Origin: Bugula neritina
Lineage: Eukaryota; Animalia; Bryozoa
Direction of reading: 5' to 3'
Assembly: GCA_964035545.1 (NCBI GenBank)
Contig: OZ037769.1
Coordinates: 12,368,633-12,432,632, forward strand
Length of the DNA: 64,000 bases
The notes under the pieces were generated by a model. The model saw only the letters and a program-made list of their open reading frames with translations, made no database searches and was not told where the DNA came from. Each line of letters starts with the position of its first letter. Position 1 is the first letter of the stretch. Of the stretch, positions 3,922-64,000 are shown piece by piece. Made by a program: the position numbers and the translations under genes.

Positions 3922-6900
3922 ATGGCAAATATTACTGTAGACGATAAGACAAAGGTTGGATTTATTGCGTCTGGAAAAATGGCACAAGCAATGGCTAAAG
4001 GGTTCATCTCGTCAGGTATCTTACTCTTAGTCTGGGCCTCAGGCTCATATTGATATTCATATTCATATTGATTTCATAATATTAATTCATTATGATTATC
4101 ATTATGATTATGAGTTAGTGTTACAGCAATACTCATACTGGTAGTACTGCTAGTACTAGTATCAGTATACTCAACCCCTAGGACTATTTAATTACCACAA
4201 TGCTAGTGATATACTTTTGCCCCCACTGGGATTCGAACCACAGACCTCTGTCTTGCAAGCAGGTGGGCTAATCAATTACACCACAGGCGCCATTGGGTAA
4301 ACTCAACACTACAATTCCACCATTTGGTTTTGTGTTGAACTAAATGCAAAAGTAAATGCTTTATTTTCAATTTCTGTTAGCCATACTTATAATTATTAAT
4401 AATTGCTTTTATTTACTATTTTTAATTTATTTTCTTGACTGTTTTGAAAATACTCAATTGGTATGGTAAATGCTTTAAATTATTTATTTAATCAATTACA
4501 TTTACTGCTGTTGCTATTAGTATTATGTCATATCTGACAGTGACTGTCGTGTTTCTATCAATTTTGTAAAACTTGTTAACGATTTTGTCTGTTTCATTAT
4601 ACATATTTTAAACTAGCTCTTCAAATAGTCCTATAGCTTTTCAGCCACTTACTTGGTTATTAGTCGTTTCTAACACATGAGCTAATGTGAGTAGCAGTGT
4701 AATTTTATTAGTAAAAATTAACTTTAAAAATATCATTATTTGGTTCTTTGTAGATAATTAAATCAACATATATTGAGATTTCTTAGACAAATCTTGAGTT
4801 ATATGTAACTTAAACTATACTTCTACATTTTTTTGGTTTGAATCAATAATTTATGTGTTTAGGAATGTTGAAGCCAAGTCAACTTACTATGAGTGATCCG
4901 CGCAAAAACCAATATCACATATTAGAGGTATGCATTCACTAAGCTGTACAAAGCTTAAATATTTTTGTCTCTACTTATAATTATTTAGTTACGTCTACTA
5001 GAAATTCTTGGCAAGTTTAAGAAAGCGTTACCAACTGCATAAGTGTTGTTTACTTTAAGACACGTTTAACAGTCTATACTCTATGTCATGAGGAGAGCTA
5101 AAAGGAGCAACCAGTTGGTCTATGCTGTAGTGTTTGGTTAGATTTTACTTGCTGCTTTGCTTATACTTTATACATGTGTCAACTGTATAATTTGTGATGC
5201 ATGTGGAGTCATAGTTGCAAGTGTTGTGTGTGTATGTAAGCAAATATATGTTTATAATAAATTTATTTGGGTTGATGCTAGTGTTTTACTCCTTTTACCT
5301 CTCACTATTGTACAGTAAGTCATGTGATTTTATTGGCAGGAAATGGGAGTTGTCAAAACACAGTCTAACGTCACAGTAGTTCAAGAGAGCACTATAGTGT
5401 TTGTGGCAGTGAAGCCTCATTTTGTCCGGATGGTGCTGAAGGAGGTGTGTCAACACATTACTAAGAAGCATTTGATTGTCTCTATAGCAGCAGGAGTCTC
5501 TCTGGAGGGTCTCGAGGAGGTATCTATGACCTCGTAATGTTTTAGTCGGGATCCATGATATTTCTAAGCAAATTAAAAATATCCCTAACACACCCTCGTA
5601 GCAGGGTATGCAACGTGTATATATAACATGTGTTTATTATTAGGACCCATTTGTTTTCCATAATTTACTGTTTAGGTTATAAAACTTGATAAATTGGAAG
5701 ATATTGCTGGAATAACAATTGTTTGAAGTTTTGTTTACATAGAGTTTAGAGTTTAGACCCTAGTATAGAGGTAAATTTAATCATGATGTTAATGTCTGTT
5801 TTGTAGGAATGCCCTCTTGGCACACATGTAATAAAAGTTATGCCCAACACTCCTTGTCTAGTCCAGTGCGGGCTGGCTGTGTATTCGTTAGGTACACATG
5901 CTACCAAAGAAGATGGAGATCTGGTTAAATCTTTACTCTCATCCCTCGGTATGGTAGAAGAGATACCAGATAGACTGATGGCTCCGGCATCAGCCGTCGG
6001 TGGATGTGGCCCCGCCTACGTAAGCTAAGTCTAGCCCCGCCTATGTAAGCTAAGTCTAGCCCCGCCTACGTAAGCTAAGTCTAGCCCCGCCTACGTAAGC
6101 TAAGTCTAGCCCCGCCTACGTAAGCTAAGTCTAGCCCCGCCTATGTAAGCTAAGTCTAGCCCCGCCTATGTAAGCTAACTCTAGCCTCGCCTATGTAAGC
6201 TAACTTTAGCCCCGCCTATGTAAACTAACTCTAGCCCCGCCTACGTAAGCTAAGTCTAGCCCCGCCTACGTAAGCTAAGTTTAGCCCTGTCTATGTAAGA
6301 TAAGTCTAGCCCCGCCTATGTAAGCTAAATCTAGCTAGTTGAATTTTACTAAAATTAACATTCAAAGTTATTGTATGTATGTGTGAGGTGTTACTCTACA
6401 TATAGCAAAAGTGGTCAGAGGGCTGTTACTGTAGAGTGGCTTCATTGTCAACTACTTGGTGATTCCATATTATATGAGTCAGTATTCTTTGGTAGATGTA
6501 TACGGCCATTGATGCCCTTGCTGATGGTGGAGTGAAAATGGGTCTCCCGAGAGAGTTGTCAAAGAAGCTTGCTGCCCAGATGATGATGGTGAGAGCTAGT
6601 TTTAGCGTATTGTAGTAGGCCTGTAGTTGAGCTGCTCTTTGTTTTTAGGTTTTCAGTTTAAAAGTGTTTTGGTATCTGTTATTCTATTCTCTAACAATAA
6701 GTAGTCATTCTGCATTGAGAGTGAAAGCATCTGATTTCCCATCTCTGCTATAAAAAGGCTGTCAGTTGAGATTTTTAAGGGTTGCCTCCACTTGGCACAT
6801 ATCTTATACATGTCTTATATATAAAATATATATTAATATATAGTTATAAATATATTGCTATGCCTTCTACTGTAAACTGCTACCAACTACAGCTTTTCAA

Positions 6901-53266: not shown

Positions 53267-55431
53267 ATGCCTCATCTTCTGTTATGGCTAATCACCCTCC
53301 TCACAACAACATATTCCTCTCAGTTCACCACTTCACTCAGGAACTTTGATCTGAATAAAGACAGCCACTTTAATGCTGCCTATGGCAGCAGAATAGAGGT
53401 CACACCAGCTGAGTCAGCTTCCTGTGAACAAGGTACCCACTGCGTTACTCCGTGGTGGTTTCATGATGTCCGTGGTTCAAGCAACTCCACAGAGGTTAGT
53501 TATCACTTGCTGATGACACTATTTCAAAATTTACGGTGTCTTTTACTACTATAATAGGTGTGTGATTAACTTCTTTAGAGCCTAAACGCTCAATAGAAGA
53601 GCAGTCAAAAAATAAACTTGTTTTATATTGCTAATATCTTAACTCCCATCTGCTTTTAAATTGTTTTTTTAATGTGTAAGACTTGCAATTTTGCATAATA
53701 TTTTCATTTCTACAAAATTAATCTTCAACATTAAGTTATACCTGTGTTTTGTGCATAACATACGAAAATAATTTCAGCAACATATCGTTTTGGGAACCTT
53801 TAACCTACAACTGGATCCAAGCCTGATCGAGCAAAACATGCAGTGACTATTGCAGTAGTGTTTATACACTGACTGATGGTTGAAGAGTTTATCATTTTAC
53901 ATTGTATGTAGCTACAATCTCAATGCCATGCATTATGCTAAAAGACCATATAATAAATATCACTGCATTTATTAGTAATTTCTTGTAGGTAAATATATGT
54001 TACTACAGAATTGTTTAGCAAACCCACCCTTATGAAGTATATAATAATACACTTGTAGTTTAAATAGCTATATATGCAAATACTTGCATAATTAACCTGT
54101 CTTCAAATATTATAATGTTGATTGATTGCCAGTCTATTACAGTAGTTTTATGAAAAATGAGATATAATTAAAATTCAACTCTGACGTGTAGCATTAACTA
54201 ATTAAGATAACCTAGCATGCTGTTTTTAACTTGAAATAATTTATTGCAAAGTAAGCAGTATTAAGTATACAATTAGTAAATAAATAATACTATCAGTACT
54301 TATTATAAAACTCTAGGAACTTGATAATCTAACAAATGAGTGATGTAAATGTAACCCTGTTCTATAATACAATTATGCTCCACCCTTGTACTATTTTTCG
54401 TCAATGAAAATTATGTGACTTCTTAACTTAATGCATAAATTAAACATTATACAATTGTAAAGATATTTTACCAATAATCAAAATGCTAAACATGCATGTT
54501 TATACAAATATAAACATGTGGGTGTGGGTGTGGGTGTGTGAGAGAAAGCTTTATTAGTATATTATAGGTTAAAATGATACATTGGATATGGAATATAAGT
54601 AAATAGAAGGCAAAAAAGATGTTGAATTGCTTCACGTATTATAAAACAATATTTCCGTATTTCAGTAATAATTTGTATAAATATTGACATAAATACATTC
54701 TAATACATACATTGTAGTATATAATAGTATATTTGTGTGTACTTTTTATAAGGTATTGAAATAGGTATGTAGGTTGTCATAACTGCTTTTGTAGGAGTTT
54801 GAATCTCTTGCAACCAGGAATAGACTCAACTCTAGATGTAGTAGACTGGAAGTCAAGTGCAACCACACTTGCCCCTCGTTACAATACTCAACCCCTAGAC
54901 CACAGTCTATAGCTTTTAATACAGGTAATATGAACAATCAGTGGATATTTGGTTAATCAGCATTTAATCTAAACGAAGTGTTTTGCCTTAAAAAACTGTT
55001 ACAGGAATAGCGCAACATAAAGTCTTGCTTACTTCACTACATTCCTGAAAGGAAAGTATTGGGTATATGATTTCATTATATCACAGCTACAGTGGCCGAC
55101 TAGCACATATTTTCTATGTTGGATGAATTTAATAAACTATTATTTATTTTAGTACAATGTCACAGTGATGGATCCAGATACTTCACCGCTACTAAAGACA
55201 TGAAATACCCCCTCTTAATCTCAACCAATGACTCTTGTAGCTCGTTCACTTTTATCAGTGAATTTTCTAGAGCAGCTGGGTGGAACTTTATATTTGACCT
55301 TGACCTTAACCATATGAGGTAACTGTACTAATATATATATCTATATATATATATATATACATATATATACATACATATATATACATATATATACATATAT
55401 ATATATATACATATATATATACATACACACA

Positions 55432-55510
<79 letters not shown>

Positions 55511-58500
55511 CTTGAGTTATGTAGAAAACTTAGTGCTGGACAACAGCTACTCTTGGAAGGCAAGCTAGTGTCTAAACAAGGTGCTCAGTCTACAGATGAA
55601 ACTTTCCTCTGGACAGTAGACCAGAAGGACGGTCAACTGCATTTGTCTCTAAAGTGGTTGATGTCTAAACAGTTCAACGCGGCACCGCAGACATTATACA
55701 GGTCTGAAGAGGCTTTAGTTGGTGATTCAGTGACAGTCCATTTGTTCTTAAAAGTAAGTTAATTAAGACTCAGATTTTTAAACAAAATTTGCTTTTTAAA
55801 ATGATGCCTAGAAAACAATAAAAGAATGTTTAAAGGAAGTCGCTAGAGGTTAACCTACTTTGAAAATGATTTACTCATGTACATATGATATTAATTATGT
55901 TTATATAGTAAAATATCTACTATAAAGTTTTCACTTCTGCGCTTCAAAAACAATTATTGTAAAATACCTATTTCAAGGATCAAATTTAATAGAAACCCAT
56001 TAAACTTATTTTGCTACAAAGTCATCAATGAATGCTGCTAAACCTAACAAGCTACTGCACAATGTCTCGAAGTATTAAAAAATAATGTATCTTTTCAAAT
56101 GAGAAGCAACTATTTCGATCAAGCTTTATATTTTCTTTGTCCACTGTTATATGAGTAATATAATCAACTTTAGCAGTATCATAATGTTTTACATACTGAT
56201 GAACTAGATGTGATTTAGCAGAGTTGTTCTTTCTTACAATAAAGGCTTACACTTAGCTTGGAACAGAAAAAAAAAGTCTTGAAGCATTTCACAGCTCACT
56301 ATTACACTTTAACTATTGTAATAATTGGCTTCTAAATTAGATCACCCAAGTATTTTAAGTTTGAAAGCCAATAAAAGGCTGAGTTTTAACTGAAGTGACT
56401 CTATCACTCTTCCTGATGTGTTTATAGTAAAATTAAATTGTAAGCAAAATATTTAGGTTTTGAACATAATGCATGTTTGCCTGTGTATGGTGAAGCCTGA
56501 CTAGACCATTGTTCAATTTTACAGCATATAACTAAAGCTCCAGGCTCCACATGTTTCTATGTCAATGGAGTGCATGCAGCCTGTTTGCCTAGCATCAGCC
56601 TCTATGATAAAGCTATAGCTTTTGTCAGTTTGAACGGTAAGAATAACTTTGGTCTGAGAACTGTATCAGGGAGTATCAGAGACATTCAACTCTACAAGAT
56701 GGGACTCAGCTCAGTGATCATATCTGAGAGGTAAGAAACTCTTACAGGTTTAAATTGATTTGAAGTTGCAAAGGAATTTGTAAGAATTTTTAGAAATAGG
56801 CTTTTGTGGAAAAGCAATTGTAGAAAGGTTGGTTAGTAATTTGAAAGCTTGTTGTAGTGGAGGAGAGACGCTGTTGGTTTGAAGGTAAGTTGTGCAGTGA
56901 TGAAACGAAGTGAGTATACAGTTTACAGTTGAGTGGTACTATAGGAGTACCAACTGTTTTAGTTTTCCTACTAAAATGCAACATATAAACTAATTTTTAA
57001 TACAAGGTAAAACTTTTGTTAAAACATTTTTATCAATTCAAGTAAAAGTTCTATATTAGCCAGCAATAATGATGATGATGGGTTTACTGTATGACAACTT
57101 ACTGCTGCAGTGGTGGTAGAAGCAGCTGGCTGTCAAAATCTGTCACAAACTTTAGTGAAACTTTTAACACTATTTTTTCACATTATTTCCTATACTATTG
57201 CCAGTATTTGAGACAATAGTTCGAGCACTAGCTAACACTTGCTAGCACTTGCTGGTAGTTTCTAGCACCTGTGTTTCTTTCAGATAAAACTGCCCGCTGA
57301 CAATATAGCCTTAAATGTCTCCTCTTAGCATAGCATCCTTGAGGTTTCAAATTAATTTATACTATAGAGATTTGAGCTATTAACAATTTTACTAATATGC
57401 ACCTGCGTCCAAGAATTTCTAAGATCTACTCTGGCCAGTTTTAATACTGCAAATATTAATTTGTGCAGGGAAATACAGACAGTATATTTGAGGAGTATTG
57501 GTGCCACACTCAGTGATTCTAATCATGTTGACTGTCTATGCCAGCATGTGGATTATCCTAGAATGGAGAGAGCAGAGTGGCTGGACTTTGGTGCTCACTC
57601 GAATGCCTATACTAACTATTGCTATAGAGGTAAGTATAGTAACAGTAACTATATAAACCATAATCATACTGGTATAGAAGTGAACAGTTGTACACTAACT
57701 AGGCATAATCATTTATATAAAATCAAGTGGTAACACTAACTAACCATAACTATTGCTCTATCGCTATAGAAGTAAGTCACTACTTAAGTTTTCATGATAT
57801 TGCATTTTATTATATTTATCTTCGAGAACTTTGGTGCACATTTCCTTAGTGTTCTACTGAGCAAGAATGTATTATATGTTATATTATGTATTATATGTTA
57901 TATTATGTATTATATGTTATATATTATGTATTATATGTTATATATTATGTATTATATATTATATTATGTATTATATGTTATATTATGTATTATATGTTAT
58001 ATATTATGTATTATATATTACATTATGTATTATATGTTATATATGATGTATTATATATTACATTATGTATTATATGTTATATATTATGTATTATATGTTA
58101 TATATTATGACTAGATTATAGATTTAAAGTTTGGAAAATGAGAAAAATAAAAAAAAAGTTGAGAACCATTTTTTAGGTAAAAATAAACTTGATAAAAATT
58201 GATAGCTATACATTTTTTCACTCTGTTAAAAACTGAACTTGGCTCAATGATTTTACGATAAATGCTGAAGCCTGAACATAAATGTGTGAAAGAAAATTAA
58301 TTTTTTCTAAATTCAGTGTAATTTATAATACTTGTCATATTCTTGTTTTGCTGAGTTCCTATTTTATTGTTCTCCCACATATAAGAAGATGACCCTAAAC
58401 TATCCATGAAAAGTGCAACAGATAATGGAAGGATAACTCTAAATAAGCGATGCACAGTTATAGTATATAATACGAAAGCACTAATCATATTAATACTGTT

Positions 58501-61500
58501 AAATGCATGTTATATAATTTAGATATCTCCAACAGTACAAATAGAATACCTCGAATGAACGAGCATGAACACGGAGTCTACAATGTAATAGACAATGACC
58601 TCTACACAATGTGGATGTCTATGACAGGCTTAGATAACATTAACATTACTCTTACATTCCCTCATCAAGTCATAGTAAGTTGTGAGTTCATAGTTTAACT
58701 TTCCACAGAACTGTGTGCTTTTGTCATCTATAGCAATTAGCTAGCAATTAAAAAATAATTTTCGCCAGTCAAATAAATGTATTTGTGTGATCATTTAATG
58801 GAAAATTACTTTAGAAGATATTGATGGTAATTTTGCTATTTTATTTTGATAGTTGGAGTTATTAGCAATCAGCAAGAAAGTAATACTATTTTATGTCATA
58901 TGCATGTATGTACGACATTATATTGTGAAATTACATTAAACAGCATGGTGGTACTAGTTATGCTATTCAATGTTTGGAGTTATGCGCTCTCAACTAAAAT
59001 GCAGGTGGAATACTTATAGATAAAAGGGTTGATTCTAGCCTTGTCTGCTCTGCCAAGTTCTATAAAAGTGTGGCGAGTGTCTGATGGCAGGTTATTAGGT
59101 CAGATTAGACTGAGTTGTAGAACTGGGGATATGAACTGTGTGACATGGGGGGACATAACTTCTACGGCCCTTCCACCTGGCTTGCTATCCTTGTAGGTTT
59201 ATGTTTTGTTTATATACATAATTAAACCAATAAAAGCTTTGTTGATATTTTTTAAATGTCTTGGTTATTATAGCTAATGTTGCTTAAAAATGAAATCTTT
59301 TTACATAATGTATCTATACATTGTATGACATGATATAATAAGAGAATATTATCTTATAAAATGTTATACTATAATTGAAAATACTGATAGCAATAATATT
59401 TATATTGCTAGTTGTAATTTTCTTTGGCCAAGTGAACGATATTTTGTAATAATGTATTCCAAAGGATGTACGCAATTTCGATATGATTCCAAATGCTATT
59501 TTTCATAGTATTATATTAGAATATTACACTATATATTATAATATTCAAGAGCGTTTTCAAGACAATCTTTCACTCTGGTTGTTTGAAAGTGCGTCTTACA
59601 TTCATGTATATATATGCATGTTGTTACTTGCATATTATATATCTGTATATGATATAGCGTAGGCCTATATGAAAATAGTTGCCACAAAAATAGACTATGA
59701 TTTGTAGACCGAAATTCCCAACATTCGAATGGATGCTGAGCCAACCCACTCAAGCTGACAAAATAGTTTTACAGTTCCAGGGCTATCAAAGCAGCAATGT
59801 GTTCCTTATCAATGAAATCTTTGTTGTTGCTACGTAAGAATTTTATTCTTCACAAGTAACACTTTCTAATTATCAAATAGTTAAAATAAACCTTTAAGCG
59901 CTTCACAGAAAGGGAATAGTTGTGTACATTATTGTTTTTAAAAGTTTTTATAACTAAACTGATAATATTCTAATTATTCTACTCTGATGTGTTGCGAAAT
60001 GCATTAACATAAGTGCTCTCTCTGTATCTCACTCAGCTACGAGTCCCTGCATGAAGGCCTGGCCTCATGCTCGTGAGAATCATACGAAACTCGTGTGACG
60101 ATTTTCGTGAGTTATCCTCTCATTATGACTAGCCACACACTCGTCGGACGAAACAAATAATAAATAGTCCGTGAATGAGTCTTGTATGAGATACAAACAG
60201 CAGAAAATTGCTAATTACTGTTGTGATTTTTCGTCCATCGTTTTCGTTTGAATTCCCTCAAATTTGATCGGATGTTTAAGTTTTCGTGTCAAATAGACGA
60301 TTTTGTGTAATTCTCATGAGTGTGTGGCCAGGCCTTAAACCTTAATTCGTGTTGATAGAGAAACAAATTTAACTCACGAATCCATTAACTTTGGTCATTT
60401 TGTCCCTATACACACATACTTAAGCCACGAAACAGGGTCCAAGCCCTTCTTGTGATTTATGAATTTTGTGAGAAATGAATCCATGTGTTGTGCCATGTAA
60501 TACATATTCAACTTATTCAACTTGCTTTCAGATGTTCATGTTCACCAGAGTCTACCTGTAAAGTAAACCACCAGGCTACAGCGAGTACAGCTTTCTCTAA
60601 CCACAAGTGTATCTGCCCTGACAGACTTTCTGGTACTCACTGTAACGAGTGTGAAGATGGATATTTTACTCCCACAGCTGCTGGAAGTCTCCTTAGATCT
60701 AGTAAGAGTTGTCCTCACTTCAAGGTCACTTTTTAAAATGACCTATATAAAAGTGCTTTTCTAAAATTGGGCTTTGTACACTTGCTTTAAAGATTTTGCA
60801 TGATATATGCTTTATTTTCCCTGTATGCATCATAGAAAATTTCCAGTTGATTGTTCTTCAAAAGTGTTTCGAATTTATGTCAAAAATATGAGCAATATGT
60901 TTTGAGGCTTTGTGAGCTGGAAGGGTATAGCAACGATTTTTTTCTTCTATATCTGAATTAACTGTGATCAATACAAAGCATGAAGGTTGAGGTATTCTGT
61001 TTTTGCAAAGCATAGAAAACCTGTCGATAATAAATTTACTTAAAATTAAAACTATACATGTTTTAACATAGTTCCAGCAAGAAAATGACTTATATACAAG
61101 CAGCCTCGGCTAACTAATTTGTCAGCAGAAGAATGAAACAGACTTTGGGTTGAGTCATCAGGTTTTTCAAAGTATATTCTATTTGCCTGGTGAAATATGT
61201 AGCCAAGTAAAAATAACTTTGTGACTGTCACTGCAGTGTTTCCATTTTTTCATTTTGTGCAAATGGATTTTTCGTTTGATGTTTGTTAACAGTTTCATAG
61301 AATGAAATCACAACCACAGGTTGATACAACCAGCAACTACAAATGCATTCATATGACCACCTGTACGGATTTATTCAAAGCAATGAAAATGCAGCTTATG
61401 ATAATTACTTATAATTTTAGATATGTGTGAACCTTGCACTTGTAACTCTAAAGGAACCTGCCAGATCTCAGCCAATGGTTGTTGGCCAAAAACAGTGAGC

Positions 61501-64000
61501 TTGTGCAATAGTAAAGGCCAGTGTTTGTGTCGATTTGGGAATTCCAGCAAAACAGATAGCTCCAATTACAAATGTGTAAGAAATCTACTATCCTTTCTGA
61601 TTATCCTATGATTAATACATCTTGCCTATGAGTTTACTTAATTGTATATCTTTACCATGGTATAATTTATAGTTTTAACTAGATTATATGTTAACTAAAT
61701 GCTTGCTTAATAATTAGTTAGAACTCTTTTATTCTGAAAAATTCTAAAACATCAGCTTTAAAATATGTGGAGTATCCAAAAACCACAAATAGTTTGTTGT
61801 TTTTAGACTATTTATAGGACAAGTCATATAGTGAGATGTGTAAACTAATTTAATAAAGCAGCTTTTACAGCCTACTTTACTTTTTTAAAAAAATTGAATT
61901 GTTTTTGACAAGTTATAAGTTTGATAAATCTATTCTAGTAAAATTAGAAAAAAGAATCTCCAAGTAACTACCTAGTTAGACCAGTATCACATGTACCTCA
62001 GAGCATGAAAGGAAAAGTAGTATTTCCATATATTCAGTTATATTTATGATTCGAATGGGAGATAACACTCTTAGAAGCTTTACGCCAAAGCTCTTTAACT
62101 AAACATAAAGATTTACACTATATTTTAGCTACTTTAAAAAATAGAATCTTAATTGTAGGCACTTTTTAAGATTTCCTTCAAGTTTTAGAAAATCTCAAAA
62201 GTAACTTAAAATTGTATATACACATTAATTAACTGTAAACAGCTGTAGCATATTACATAACTTACTGAGTTGTTTGCTCGATTTGTTAGAAAGCAGTGCT
62301 TAGATCCATAACACCAGAGTATGGGCCAGCATCAGGGGGTACAGAAGTAACTATTACAGGAAGTTACATCATAGCCCATAGCACAGTAACGATGACCAGC
62401 ACAACACACTCAGCAAAAGTTTATACAAGGAAAGCAACTCCAAAGAAGTGAGCTATTTTTAAATAAATAACTTTATAATCTTCAGCATAATTCACATCAA
62501 AATAATTTTTACCTTTGAGGAAGTTTATAACCAACTTGAGTACACCAATGGGTTTTGTTGTAGCCGAGTGGTGCCTGGCATGCTTAAAAAACCACCAAAA
62601 TGAGTGTTTTGCTTGATCTCAAAGCTCTCAAAATTCTATATTTTGTCACTCTTTTCAGGAGTAATAAAGATGGATTAGAACAAATAGTGTTTGTAACTCC
62701 AGTCTCCCAAGGAACTGAGGACAAGTTTATCATTCGGCTTGCTGGTGGAGTGCTAGAGACTTCAACTCTCCTGACGTTCAGTTACAGACCTGATCCAGTT
62801 GTGACATTTGTGAGATCTAGGAATATAAATGTTGAGTAGGTTATGCAAAGACTGTGCCAACTTTTAGACTATTGGCATATCTTTACATATCTGAATAGGC
62901 CTGAAGCACTATAAATGGTAAAATTATCATAAAATGCAAACAAATAGATTTCAATAACAGCTTGTAGCCTAACTACTGCTACCAACTTTCTAGAGTAGTA
63001 TGTATAATTGGTTGTTATTTCTTTGATAAAGTAGGACAATTATATTATACGTAGGTACCTTTAGTATCCACAAACCAATAGCCTGTTACTTGACAGTGAC
63101 TGCCTTGCATTTTCTAGAGGTGGACTAGAAGTGAAAGTGGTGGGAGACAACTTCAACTCAGTAGCTCATATCCGTCTGCTCACACACCTACATTGCCTGA
63201 CCACTGGAAAATATTACAAGACTGTTTCTTCAGTGAGTAATCTTAATTGAAAATACAGTCTTTACATTATACTTTGCTTACTAATCAGAGAGAGTTAATC
63301 ATTAAACAGCTGCCTAGTTTATGGGATCAGTTTAAATGGTGGGGTGAAATATCGAATCACTTTCTGAGATTACAGTTTGATATTTTATAATTTTTCTAAA
63401 GACTGCTCAGTGACTCAACAGTCAATGCTGAGATATATTTGGCTCATCGCAAACCAAAAAAGACAATGTATAAGTATATCATTATCAAGTAAATAAACAG
63501 TTGCAGCTGTCTAAGTACAGAACTTTTTTTATAGCAAATGAGATTTGTAGTGCAGCACCAACAATGGCACCAACAGCACCACCATAAGACAAAACTGTAA
63601 AACTTTTACCCCGCCCCCACTATAATTCCTATATAAGCAAGTGCGATAACCATTACACCCCAGAAGCTACTGGGGAAACTCAACACTACAGACACCAATT
63701 CTTTAATCTAGTACTGTAAAAAATCAAAGTGTACTAGTTAGTTTGATGTGTTATTAGCTAGATCTCAATGTGTGCAAATATTGTTTTCACCACACTGACA
63801 TTTTTGCACTGAACTTATCTTTTTATTGAACAGAGCTGTCAGGGGAATGAGACATTTCTTATTTGTATTACCCCAAAACTCACTGAGGAGTTGCTGAGAA
63901 TAGAATGTGTCAGGACTCAACGTCTGCGAAGAAGAACCAACACTGTGCTACGAACTGATTACAGTGAGATATACGCTGTCTTGGGTCTACAATTTGATGG
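53267..64000 (+). CDS. Large secreted or cell-surface protein, 3' end outside the window: signal peptide, LamG-like, laminin N-terminal-like, 2 laminin-EGF-like and 2 IPT/TIG domains (usherin-like head, plexin-like stalk), >830 aa
   Basis: Exons 53267-53494, 54795-54924, 55153-55318, 55525-55753, 56525-56730, 57469-57629, 58523-58674, 59020-59192, 59708-59833, 60532-60701, 61421-61575, 62290-62447, 62659-62835, 63118-63232, 63834-64000+ join in phase with no stops. Motifs: [14 protein letters not shown]; [25 protein letters not shown]; [20 protein letters not shown]; [19 protein letters not shown]; FSYRPDPVV; [15 protein letters not shown]; LICITPKL. Confidence 0.85.
55330..55505. repeat. (TA)n microsatellite with CA interruptions filling a short intron
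   Basis: Direct reading; intron 55319-55524. Confidence 0.95.
57866..58110. repeat. AT-rich 19/21-bp minisatellite
   Basis: Unit TATTATGTATTATATGTTA(TA). Confidence 0.9.
60012..60487 (-). mobile_element. MITE family B, copy 6, interrupted by a second element
   Basis: AGTGCTCTCTCTGTATCTCACTCAGCTACGAGTCC precedes the insert and AAACCTTAATTCGTG...TTTAACTCACGAATCC...TAAGCCACGAAACAGGGTCCAAGCC follows it. These segments are contiguous in the other copies. Confidence 0.8.
60055..60335. mobile_element. MITE family C (PIF/Harbinger-like) nested in MITE B
   Basis: 26-bp TIRs AGGCCTGGCCTCATGCTCGTGAGAAT / ATTCTCATGAGTGTGTGGCCAGGCCT. Flanks are TGA and TAA, one mismatch from a TAA-type 3-bp target duplication. 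Confidence 0.75.
63602..63690 (-). mobile_element. Degenerate second copy of the tRNA-like repeat at 4218-4313
   Basis: AGCAAGTGCGATAACCATTACACCCCAGAAGCTACTGGGGAAACTCAACACTACA resembles AGCAGGTGGGCTAATCAATTACACCACAGGCGCCATTGGGTAAACTCAACACTACA. Confidence 0.6.

Follow-up and report, generated by a model that had tools for sequence, protein, structure and literature searches.

A kinase-less, laminin-headed candidate receptor related to MET in the bryozoan Bugula neritina

We analyzed a 64,000-nucleotide (nt) stretch of the genome of the bryozoan Bugula neritina, hereafter called the window (contig C5, positions 12368633 to 12432632, plus strand). From window position 53267 onward it holds what reads as one bryozoan protein-coding gene, which runs past the window's end and is predicted to encode a single-pass type I membrane protein of ~1270 residues. 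Read from its N terminus, the protein begins with a signal peptide and a Cys-rich stretch; these are followed by a domain like Laminin_G_3, a divergent laminin N-terminal (LN)-like domain, two laminin-EGF modules, three IPT/TIG domains, a transmembrane (TM) helix, and a 270-residue tail.

The genome comprises 216,009,554 bases, with large contigs C1 to C9; the published assembly has 9 chromosomal pseudomolecules and a stated size of 216.00 Mb (PMC11480708). The region is AT-rich (~31 to 33% GC), and its coding islands are short and GC-richer. For the exon model, open stretches on the plus strand were chained by canonical, phase-compatible GT-AG sites, and ambiguous sites were settled by homology to XP_067930202.1, a RefSeq protein of the cheilostome bryozoan Watersipora subatra named "plexin-B-like." Exons were searched singly, and the Watersipora protein served as a contiguous proxy for the spliced protein. 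The Pfam gathering cutoffs were 21 bits for EGF_laminin, 20.9 bits for TIG, and 25.9 bits for Laminin_N (PF00055), and atlas look-alike scores below 0.9 were treated as leads only. Pairs of exons were compared by their Smith-Waterman scores with shuffle controls, and the results are given as z values.

Exon chain and domain order

The gene is a chain of 17 exons joined by GT-AG introns with compatible phases at all junctions, from an ATG at 53267 to beyond the window's end, for a total of 3810 nt, or 1270 codons. Fifteen exons lie inside the window; exon 15 crosses its edge, and exons 16 and 17 were read farther along the same contig. An earlier note, made from the letters of the window, had proposed 15 in-phase exons with a junction between 61575 and 62290, and the phase chain reproduced both exactly. 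The gene is single-copy in the genome and all of its exons are on the plus strand.

Exon 1 (53267-53494) carries the ATG and the signal peptide (mean Kyte-Doolittle hydropathy of the h-region, 1.97), begins the Cys-rich N terminus, and ends in phase 0. Exon 2 (54795-54924) is also Cys-rich (C-x6-C-x3-CP) and is required for phase continuity between exons 1 and 3. The LamG-like (Laminin_G_3 or ConA-like) domain is in exons 3 (55153-55318), 4 (55525-55753), and 5 (56525-56730). The LN-like domain, of the galactose-binding-fold type, extends over the next four exons: exon 6 (57469-57629), with an usherin-type CxC..YPR..YC block; exon 7 (58523-58674), with an NRIPRMN..VIDND..W motif; exon 8 (59020-59192), which had no tblastn match and was placed by eye on its motif and on length agreement with XP_067930202.1; and exon 9 (59708-59833). 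The laminin-type EGF modules are in exons 10 (60532-60701) and 11 (61421-61575). Joining 60701 to 61421 restores the 8-Cys spacing found in XP_067930202.1; exon 11 ends in phase 0, and the EGF-to-IPT junction (61575/62290) is a phase 0 GT-AG junction. The first IPT/TIG domain is divided between exons 12 (62290-62447) and 13 (62659-62835), the latter with the sequence FSYRPDP. The first half of the second IPT is in exon 14 (63118-63232), and its end, together with most of the third, is in exon 15 (63834-64280), which contains CITP and within which the window stops at 64000. Beyond the window are exon 16 (64653-64857), with the TM helix, and exon 17 (65635-66446, then TAA), with a tyrosine-repeat tail. 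The motifs listed in the earlier note thus stand in place in exons 6, 7, 13, and 15, as does a 13-residue motif in exon 12.

The assignment of the first head domain as LamG-like is supported by residues 1 to 192 of XP_067930202.1, which matched Laminin_G_3 clusters with an atlas feature score of 0.96 (24/30 matches) and a structural TM score of ~0.6. Searched one at a time against PDB and Pfam, the head exons had no match (exon 5 alone, Laminin_G_3, E value of 0.24). For the EGF modules, EGF_laminin passed its cutoff on a single exon with 24.4 bits and did so again in XP_067930202.1. TIG likewise passed on single exons, with 28.5 bits for the first IPT and 25.1 bits for exon 15, and XP_067930202.1 shows three TIG stretches. 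When the stalk of XP_067930202.1 was compared with all PDB sequences, the only matches were to MET (IPT2-3, E value of 4.7e-9) and plexin-A (plexin-A1, E value of 2.6e-7), in keeping with the MET- or plexin-like character that had been read from the IPT motifs. The absence of a Sema domain, also claimed from the letters, was confirmed in that neither Sema nor PSI had a Pfam match in any exon or in XP_067930202.1. The TM segment, TVSITVTIAVTIIITIAVICV, in exon 16 has a mean Kyte-Doolittle hydropathy of 2.59.

Bryozoan counterparts and a kinase-bearing sister gene

When exon 15, the IPT2/3 exon, was used as the query of an exhaustive protein search, 13 matches were obtained, of which the sole long one was XP_067930202.1, 45% identical at its residues 648 to 786. 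This protein is collinear with exons 3 to 16, its residues 1 to 189 corresponding to exons 3 to 5 and its residues 609 to 638 to exon 14. The collinearity includes the EGF-to-IPT junction; this junction is supported by comparison and by splice logic, and one transcript is predicted. A word search with XP_067930202.1 for further full-length relatives, limited by a length filter, returned only the protein itself.

The Watersipora locus (L019; OY755159.1, 43744134-43782254, reversed) extends the correspondence to the N terminus. A counterpart of exon 1, which likewise starts with an ATG and a signal peptide, is at L019:851-1021 (39% identical; E value of 9e-15 in that locus), and a counterpart of exon 2 with good splice sites is at L019:8022-8186 (Smith-Waterman score of 53, z of 7.6, 0/2000 shuffles, the top score among the 67 open stretches of the interval). 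Upstream of the RefSeq start, the 5' portion of the long form of exon 3 is also conserved. Because these counterparts lie upstream of its first residue, the XP_067930202.1 model is, by this comparison, N-truncated: it begins at an internal Met and omits the signal-peptide exon, the Cys-rich exon, and the 5' portion of the exon that follows them, all at distances of no more than 9 kb upstream.

Two JGI contigs (L008 and L009), 82 to 90% identical to window positions 57941 to 65560, come from metagenomes of bryozoans and probably represent the host, a sibling lineage of Bugula (PMC5041132). In this close relative exons 7 to 16 are of identical length and open, and AG and GT are kept at every boundary. 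Exon identity is 93.2% with no indel, versus 87.9% with 62 indel events in the introns; the one indel that could be taken for exonic is a duplication in the intron, immediately past a donor. The substitutions fall on codon positions 1, 2, and 3 in the numbers 34, 28, and 67. The reading frame is open and constrained in three genomes. Separately, L009 lacks at ~6179 to 6182 the 60 nt present as L008:6252-6311, which cover the acceptor of exon 15 and its first 41 nt; this gap is either an assembly artifact or a polymorphism that would force the use of another acceptor.

The genome also contains a gene of the same design with a kinase. It is on C2 (~14109386-14124042, plus strand), where it was located by way of one TIG exon and one kinase exon separated by 6 kb. 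Its signal peptide is followed by an LN exon with the motifs CxCP..FP and RINPNSH..DGDD..YWISS, by laminin-EGFs whose last residues read ..NRKC, directly by three IPTs, and then by a TM helix and a kinase. Its catalytic exon was best matched by MET (~117 bits) and then by RON. The z values lay on a clear diagonal between the exons of the two genes, both for the C5 gene and, in parentheses, for the equivalents in XP_067930202.1: exon 7 versus the LN exon, z of 4.9 (11.0); exon 11 versus the LE exon, 6.3 (5.5); exon 12 versus IPT1a, 14.0 (11.2); exon 13 versus IPT1b, 5.6 (4.9); exon 14 versus IPT2a, 11.3 (7.4); and exon 15 versus IPT2b/3, 8.4 and 5.5 (11.2 and 7.4). When the comparison was made with the exons of a canonical Sema-MET gene on C4, only exon 12, a generic first half-IPT, matched (z of 12.3), while exons 13 to 15 gave values of no more than 3.8 and exon 14 no more than 1.3.

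The C4 gene (C4:9480429-9492204, minus strand) has a 394-codon Sema-like first exon, a PSI (CGWCSNNVC), IPTs, a TM helix, and a kinase (VKVADFGMSRD), and is of the MET/RON type. We considered this locus as a laminin-headed kinase and rejected it; on reading, it is an ordinary Sema-PSI MET. It is only recently that MET genes have been described in protostomes (PMC6374515).

The C5 and C2 genes share the order LN, EGF, IPT, and TM, similar exon breaks in the stalk, and a basic cluster (RRKR in the C2 gene). They differ in that the C2 gene has a MET-type kinase in place of a tyrosine-repeat tail, and in that a LamG-like domain was shown in the C5 gene and not in the C2 gene. Since the LN head, laminin-EGFs, IPT stalk, and TM helix are common to both and the kinase is absent from one, the C5 gene is best read as a kinase-less paralog, rather than a kinase member, within an undescribed branch of MET-like receptors with an LN head. 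The design is therefore not a one-off chimera. In the Watersipora ortholog, too, no kinase was found, and a HAD-phosphatase gene adjoins; by this comparison the kinase was lost before the lineages of Bugula and Watersipora separated.

The basic cluster of the C5 gene, RLRRR (63921-63935, plus strand), is an R-x-[KR]-R sequence in the stalk, past the second conserved Cys of the exon 15-type segment. The full form is present in 7/10 aligned sequences that span the site, including this gene, the close relative, XP_067930202.1, and the C2 kinase gene; two of the remaining three have weaker basic forms and one has none. It is a candidate furin-type proprotein-convertase site, at which the protein may be cleaved.

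At the N terminus of usherin, LN and LE domains come immediately after an LGL domain (PMC7317166), and a genuine usherin-type gene is present on C3 (~5,943,000-5,963,000, minus strand). Its exons encode a signal peptide and Cys-rich stretch, a LamG-like domain, an LN domain, many laminin-EGFs, and FN3 and LamG domains, with the motifs ACRCPPSHPR..RYC and HPLSFVNDGD..W. Exon 7 matched the LN exon of this gene with a z of 4.3, and the Watersipora equivalent did so with a z of 5.4 (0/300 shuffles each). The LN exon of the C2 gene matched the same exon with a z of 12.2; because it matches both the usherin-type LN exon and the exon 7 family, the usherin LN domain is linked through the C2 gene to this family. 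Aligned with hhalign, the LN-like region matched the LN domains of this genome at P of 0.0014, and at P of 0.0007 with usherin-type exons added, versus P of 0.19 for the discoidin control, also from this genome. In alignments with laminin beta-1 and netrin-1, the last strand of the LN-like domain and the first laminin-EGF fall on the LN-LE1 junction of those proteins, and intron phase is shared with the C3 gene at 3/4 comparable introns. Matches were not significant for exon 6, the CxC..YPR exon, alone against the usherin-type gene (z of 0.6 to 2.1), and the match of exon 2 to the first exon of that gene was weak (z of 2.0). A BLAST search of the head against the usherin-type gene found the EGFs alone.

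With moderate confidence, then, we take the second head domain to be a divergent LN-like domain, and the heads of the C5 and C2 genes look most like the LGL-LN-LE module at the usherin N terminus. The usherin-type head proposed in the earlier note stands as far as the LamG-like domain and the laminin-EGFs are concerned, and is weaker at the LN domain, for which the Pfam Laminin_N search was negative (see below).

The tyrosine-repeat tail and its proposed function

Of the features looked for past the stalk, the TM helix is present, but neither a plexin RasGAP/RBD nor a kinase follows it; instead there is the tail exon, which matched no Pfam family. A genome-wide scan for Plexin_cytopl found two loci, both on C1 and none at this gene, and a genome scan for PK_Tyr_Ser-Thr (PF07714) gave no match near C5:12.43 Mb. 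Thus, the earlier description of the protein as a plexin- or MET-like receptor holds for its kinship with MET, through the C2 kinase gene, and not for catalytic signaling, since the RasGAP/RBD and kinase are lacking.

The tail is 270 residues long, net acidic, and ends at a TAA. It has 25 Tyr, and ~17 of these recur with a period of 9 residues (27 nt) in a unit of the form xGDIQYxDT. Among the ~17 diverged units the Tyr codon is the sole invariant codon, and it is written TAT in 13 and TAC in 4. The tail frame alone is open (292 codons; the probability by chance is 1.6e-10 at this composition), and the GC content of the exon is 0.39 versus 0.30 to 0.33 in the flanks. Because an invariant Tyr codon that varies synonymously is here combined with a single open frame and raised GC, the evidence suggests that the exon is translated and under selection for its tyrosines. 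Its connection with the receptor follows, by inference, from splice logic: the exon 16 donor fits at 8/9 positions, the exon 17 acceptor has a pyrimidine tract of 10/14, and the phases match. In the C2 gene, acidic tyrosine motifs (..EDDYLVQT.. and ..DNDYLQPT..) follow the kinase (~14123806-14125553); they are loosely like DIQYxDT.

Our preferred explanation, to which we give a probability of about 0.7, is that the C5 gene is the kinase-less paralog of the LN-headed MET-like receptor kinase on C2; in this explanation, its tyrosine-repeat tail would be phosphorylated by an associated kinase. It would probably be a non-catalytic co-receptor or docking subunit. The head would bind a ligand in the matrix or on a cell surface, and the protein would signal without catalytic activity of its own. 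The tail tyrosines may be phosphorylated by the C2 paralog in a mixed complex or by a cytosolic Src-type kinase, and the phosphorylated tail could dock SH2 or PTB proteins, by analogy with a kinase-impaired docking partner or with the NTRs, receptors that are non-catalytic and tyrosine-phosphorylated. NTRs signal via Src-family phosphorylation of their tail tyrosines (PMC11399299). A bolder proposal, which we regard as doubtful, is that a Sema-less, laminin/usherin-headed MET branch split its labor in bryozoans between a paralog that retains the kinase and this one, which lost it and, in Bugula, gained an array of ~17 phosphotyrosine docking units. The two would then act as a kinase subunit and a docking subunit, comparable to ErbB2/ErbB3, or to MET and Gab1 with the scaffold made part of a co-receptor.

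Several results weigh against the proposed function and the lineage assigned to the protein. For the head, Pfam Laminin_N had no match to residues 190 to 395 of XP_067930202.1 at E values up to 10; the LN-like exons were absent from a Laminin_N scan of the Bugula genome, and the C2 paralog's exon reached 13.3 bits, below the cutoff. A family profile of the LN region retrieved no LN domain from PDB and matched an Ig domain and an IFT25-like sandwich. The first of these, the JAML Ig V domain (3mj6, E value of 5.7e-5), aligned over the CxC..YP..W stretch; we take this match as spurious, though it is unexplained. AlphaFold modeled the LN-like region, from a 10-row alignment, with a mean pLDDT of only 39.8, a low confidence that we attribute to the shallow alignment. 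BLAST similarity to the C2 gene was marginal (E values of 0.085 and 0.41 at genome size), and the two paralogs would therefore be old. For the tail, no homolog was found by word search or in the JGI contigs, and the contigs of the close relative stop 75 nt short of the tail acceptor, so that they offer no comparison for the attachment of exon 17. The tail of the Watersipora ortholog is short and without repeats, and the intron after its TM exon is at another position and phase. Exon 17 could begin at an internal ATG. Finally, xGDIQYxDT fits, to our knowledge, no known kinase or SH2 consensus.

The main rival explanation accepts the kinship with the C2 gene and rejects the signaling. The protein would be a passive decoy or adhesion molecule that shares a ligand with the C2 kinase, or binds matrix, and the tail repeats would have arisen by rapid expansion of low-complexity sequence. 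Receptor isoforms without a kinase commonly serve as decoys. The kinase-less state is common to Bugula and Watersipora, whereas their tails are wholly different, which makes the ectodomain the conserved part and the tail lineage-specific. Low-complexity drift does not sit well, however, with Tyr as the sole invariant residue of ~17 diverged units with a synonymously variable codon, nor with the acidic surroundings of each Tyr, which are often seen around kinase substrates and may have the same meaning here. We consider the decoy explanation improbable, although it is the strongest of the alternatives.

A second alternative, which we find less likely still, is that the receptor ends soon after the TM helix and that the exon with the tyrosine repeats is either an intronless gene of its own or a coding remnant with no relation to the receptor. 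The differences in the Watersipora ortholog, the lack of a tail homolog, and a possible ATG near the start of the exon 17 open frame are in its favor, as is the finding that the unspliced frame of exon 16 stops two codons past the donor. But the exon 16 donor and exon 17 acceptor are strong and their phases match, the 777-nt gap between them is typical of this gene's introns, and the two exons share a strand, with no other gene intervening. In addition, the 19-residue cytoplasmic stub that would result is unusual, though possible.

A docking receptor could also have a head of different origin. If the second head domain were a discoidin/F5-8C-like galactose-binding module, the head would be LamG-discoidin-EGF and not usherin-derived. 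The atlas look-alikes of residues 190 to 395 of XP_067930202.1 are F5/8-type-C clusters (score of 0.82; TM scores of 0.56 to 0.61); in Pfam, the C2 LN exon gave F5_F8_type_C at an E value of 0.0028 versus Laminin_N at 0.059; and the family profile aligned the H..IDxD..W core to the IFT25-like sandwich (1tvg, E value of 0.13), not to LN. Those atlas scores are below 0.9, however, and metazoan LN domains are probably scarce in that library. The hhalign probabilities favored LN over discoidin, and the strongest match was the usherin-type LN exon, both directly and through the C2 gene. The last strand continues into the first laminin-EGF as in laminin and netrin, the preceding domain is LamG-like as in usherin (PMC7317166), and three of the four comparable introns share the usherin-type phase. 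We judge a discoidin origin unlikely, slightly more so than a separate tail gene.

A truncated or degenerating plexin is suggested by the NCBI name of the Watersipora model, by the likeness of the IPTs to those of plexin-A, and by the basic cluster in the stalk, plexin-B being known for convertase cleavage, but this explanation is already largely refuted and very improbable: the gene has no Sema, PSI, or Plexin_cytopl, two intact plexins are on C1, the frame is open and constrained in three genomes, and the stalk is nearest to that of the C2 MET-type kinase gene.

Some features of the surrounding sequence are recorded here. The next gene downstream, ~16 kb away, encodes a rhodopsin-type G protein-coupled receptor in two large exons (..AISIDRF.. 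and ..NPIIYGF..; window-equivalent positions ~82100 to 83300, plus strand). The intron between exons 14 and 15 contains at 63635 to 63690 an element of ~56 nt that has >40 copies with 79 to 90% identity on all large contigs and looks like a short interspersed element or a miniature inverted-repeat transposable element. Intron 3 (55330-55510) and a downstream stretch (L004:2090-2420) contain long (TA/TATG)n and (CA)n microsatellites, whose open YIYI.. and THTH.. frames can mimic open reading frames. On C133, C141, C261, and many other small contigs there are TIG and tyrosine-kinase matches broken only by TAA or TAG, which suggests that the assembly includes DNA of some other organism, such as a ciliate, whose genetic code differs.

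Relation to known receptor families

A published survey of how plexins and MET evolved took Sema domains as its seed and does not mention a laminin-headed form (PMC6374515); surveys of this kind left Sema-less relatives of MET and plexins out of view. We found no published description of a laminin-headed, IPT-stalked receptor architecture. The C5 gene and its C2 sister would combine a MET-type stalk with a matrix-type LGL-LN-LE head in lophotrochozoans, and an LN-headed receptor appears to have lost its kinase and yet to have stayed under constraint in two or more families of bryozoans. Should the tyrosine array serve for docking, it would be a natural case of a receptor tyrosine kinase that became a scaffold receptor without catalysis, and the count of its tandem motifs would be extreme. 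The "plexin-B-like" label in RefSeq can also be corrected, as XP_067930202.1 is neither a plexin nor full-length.

Compared with usherin (USH2A), the protein appears to have the same head order, LGL-LN-LE (PMC7317166), and it shares the CxC..[YH]P..YC block and the LN core motif with the usherin-type gene on C3; the similarity of the heads is under BLAST significance. Usherin is much longer (~5200 versus ~1270 residues) and has ten LE domains, two LG domains, ~32 FN3 domains, and a PDZ-binding C terminus, whereas here two LE modules are followed by IPTs and there is no class I PDZ-binding end. With MET and RON the protein shares a membrane-proximal IPT stalk and a single TM helix, and its nearest relative has a MET-type kinase; unlike these receptors and the lophotrochozoan Met-LP kinases (PMC6374515), it is without Sema, PSI, and kinase. 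Plexins have similar IPT/TIG domains, those of plexin-A in particular, and a basic cluster in the stalk, but their Sema, PSI, and cytoplasmic RasGAP/RBD are all missing from this gene. Functionally, the closest parallels come from non-catalytic tyrosine-phosphorylated receptors and kinase-impaired docking partners such as immunoreceptors, ErbB3, Draper/MEGF10/PEAR1, and p130Cas, which also have no catalytic domain and many tail tyrosines (in p130Cas, a substrate domain). The unit xGDIQYxDT is not an ITAM, ITIM, YxxM, YxxP, or NPxY motif, and ~17 tandem copies are unusually many; the likeness to this class is one of function, not homology.

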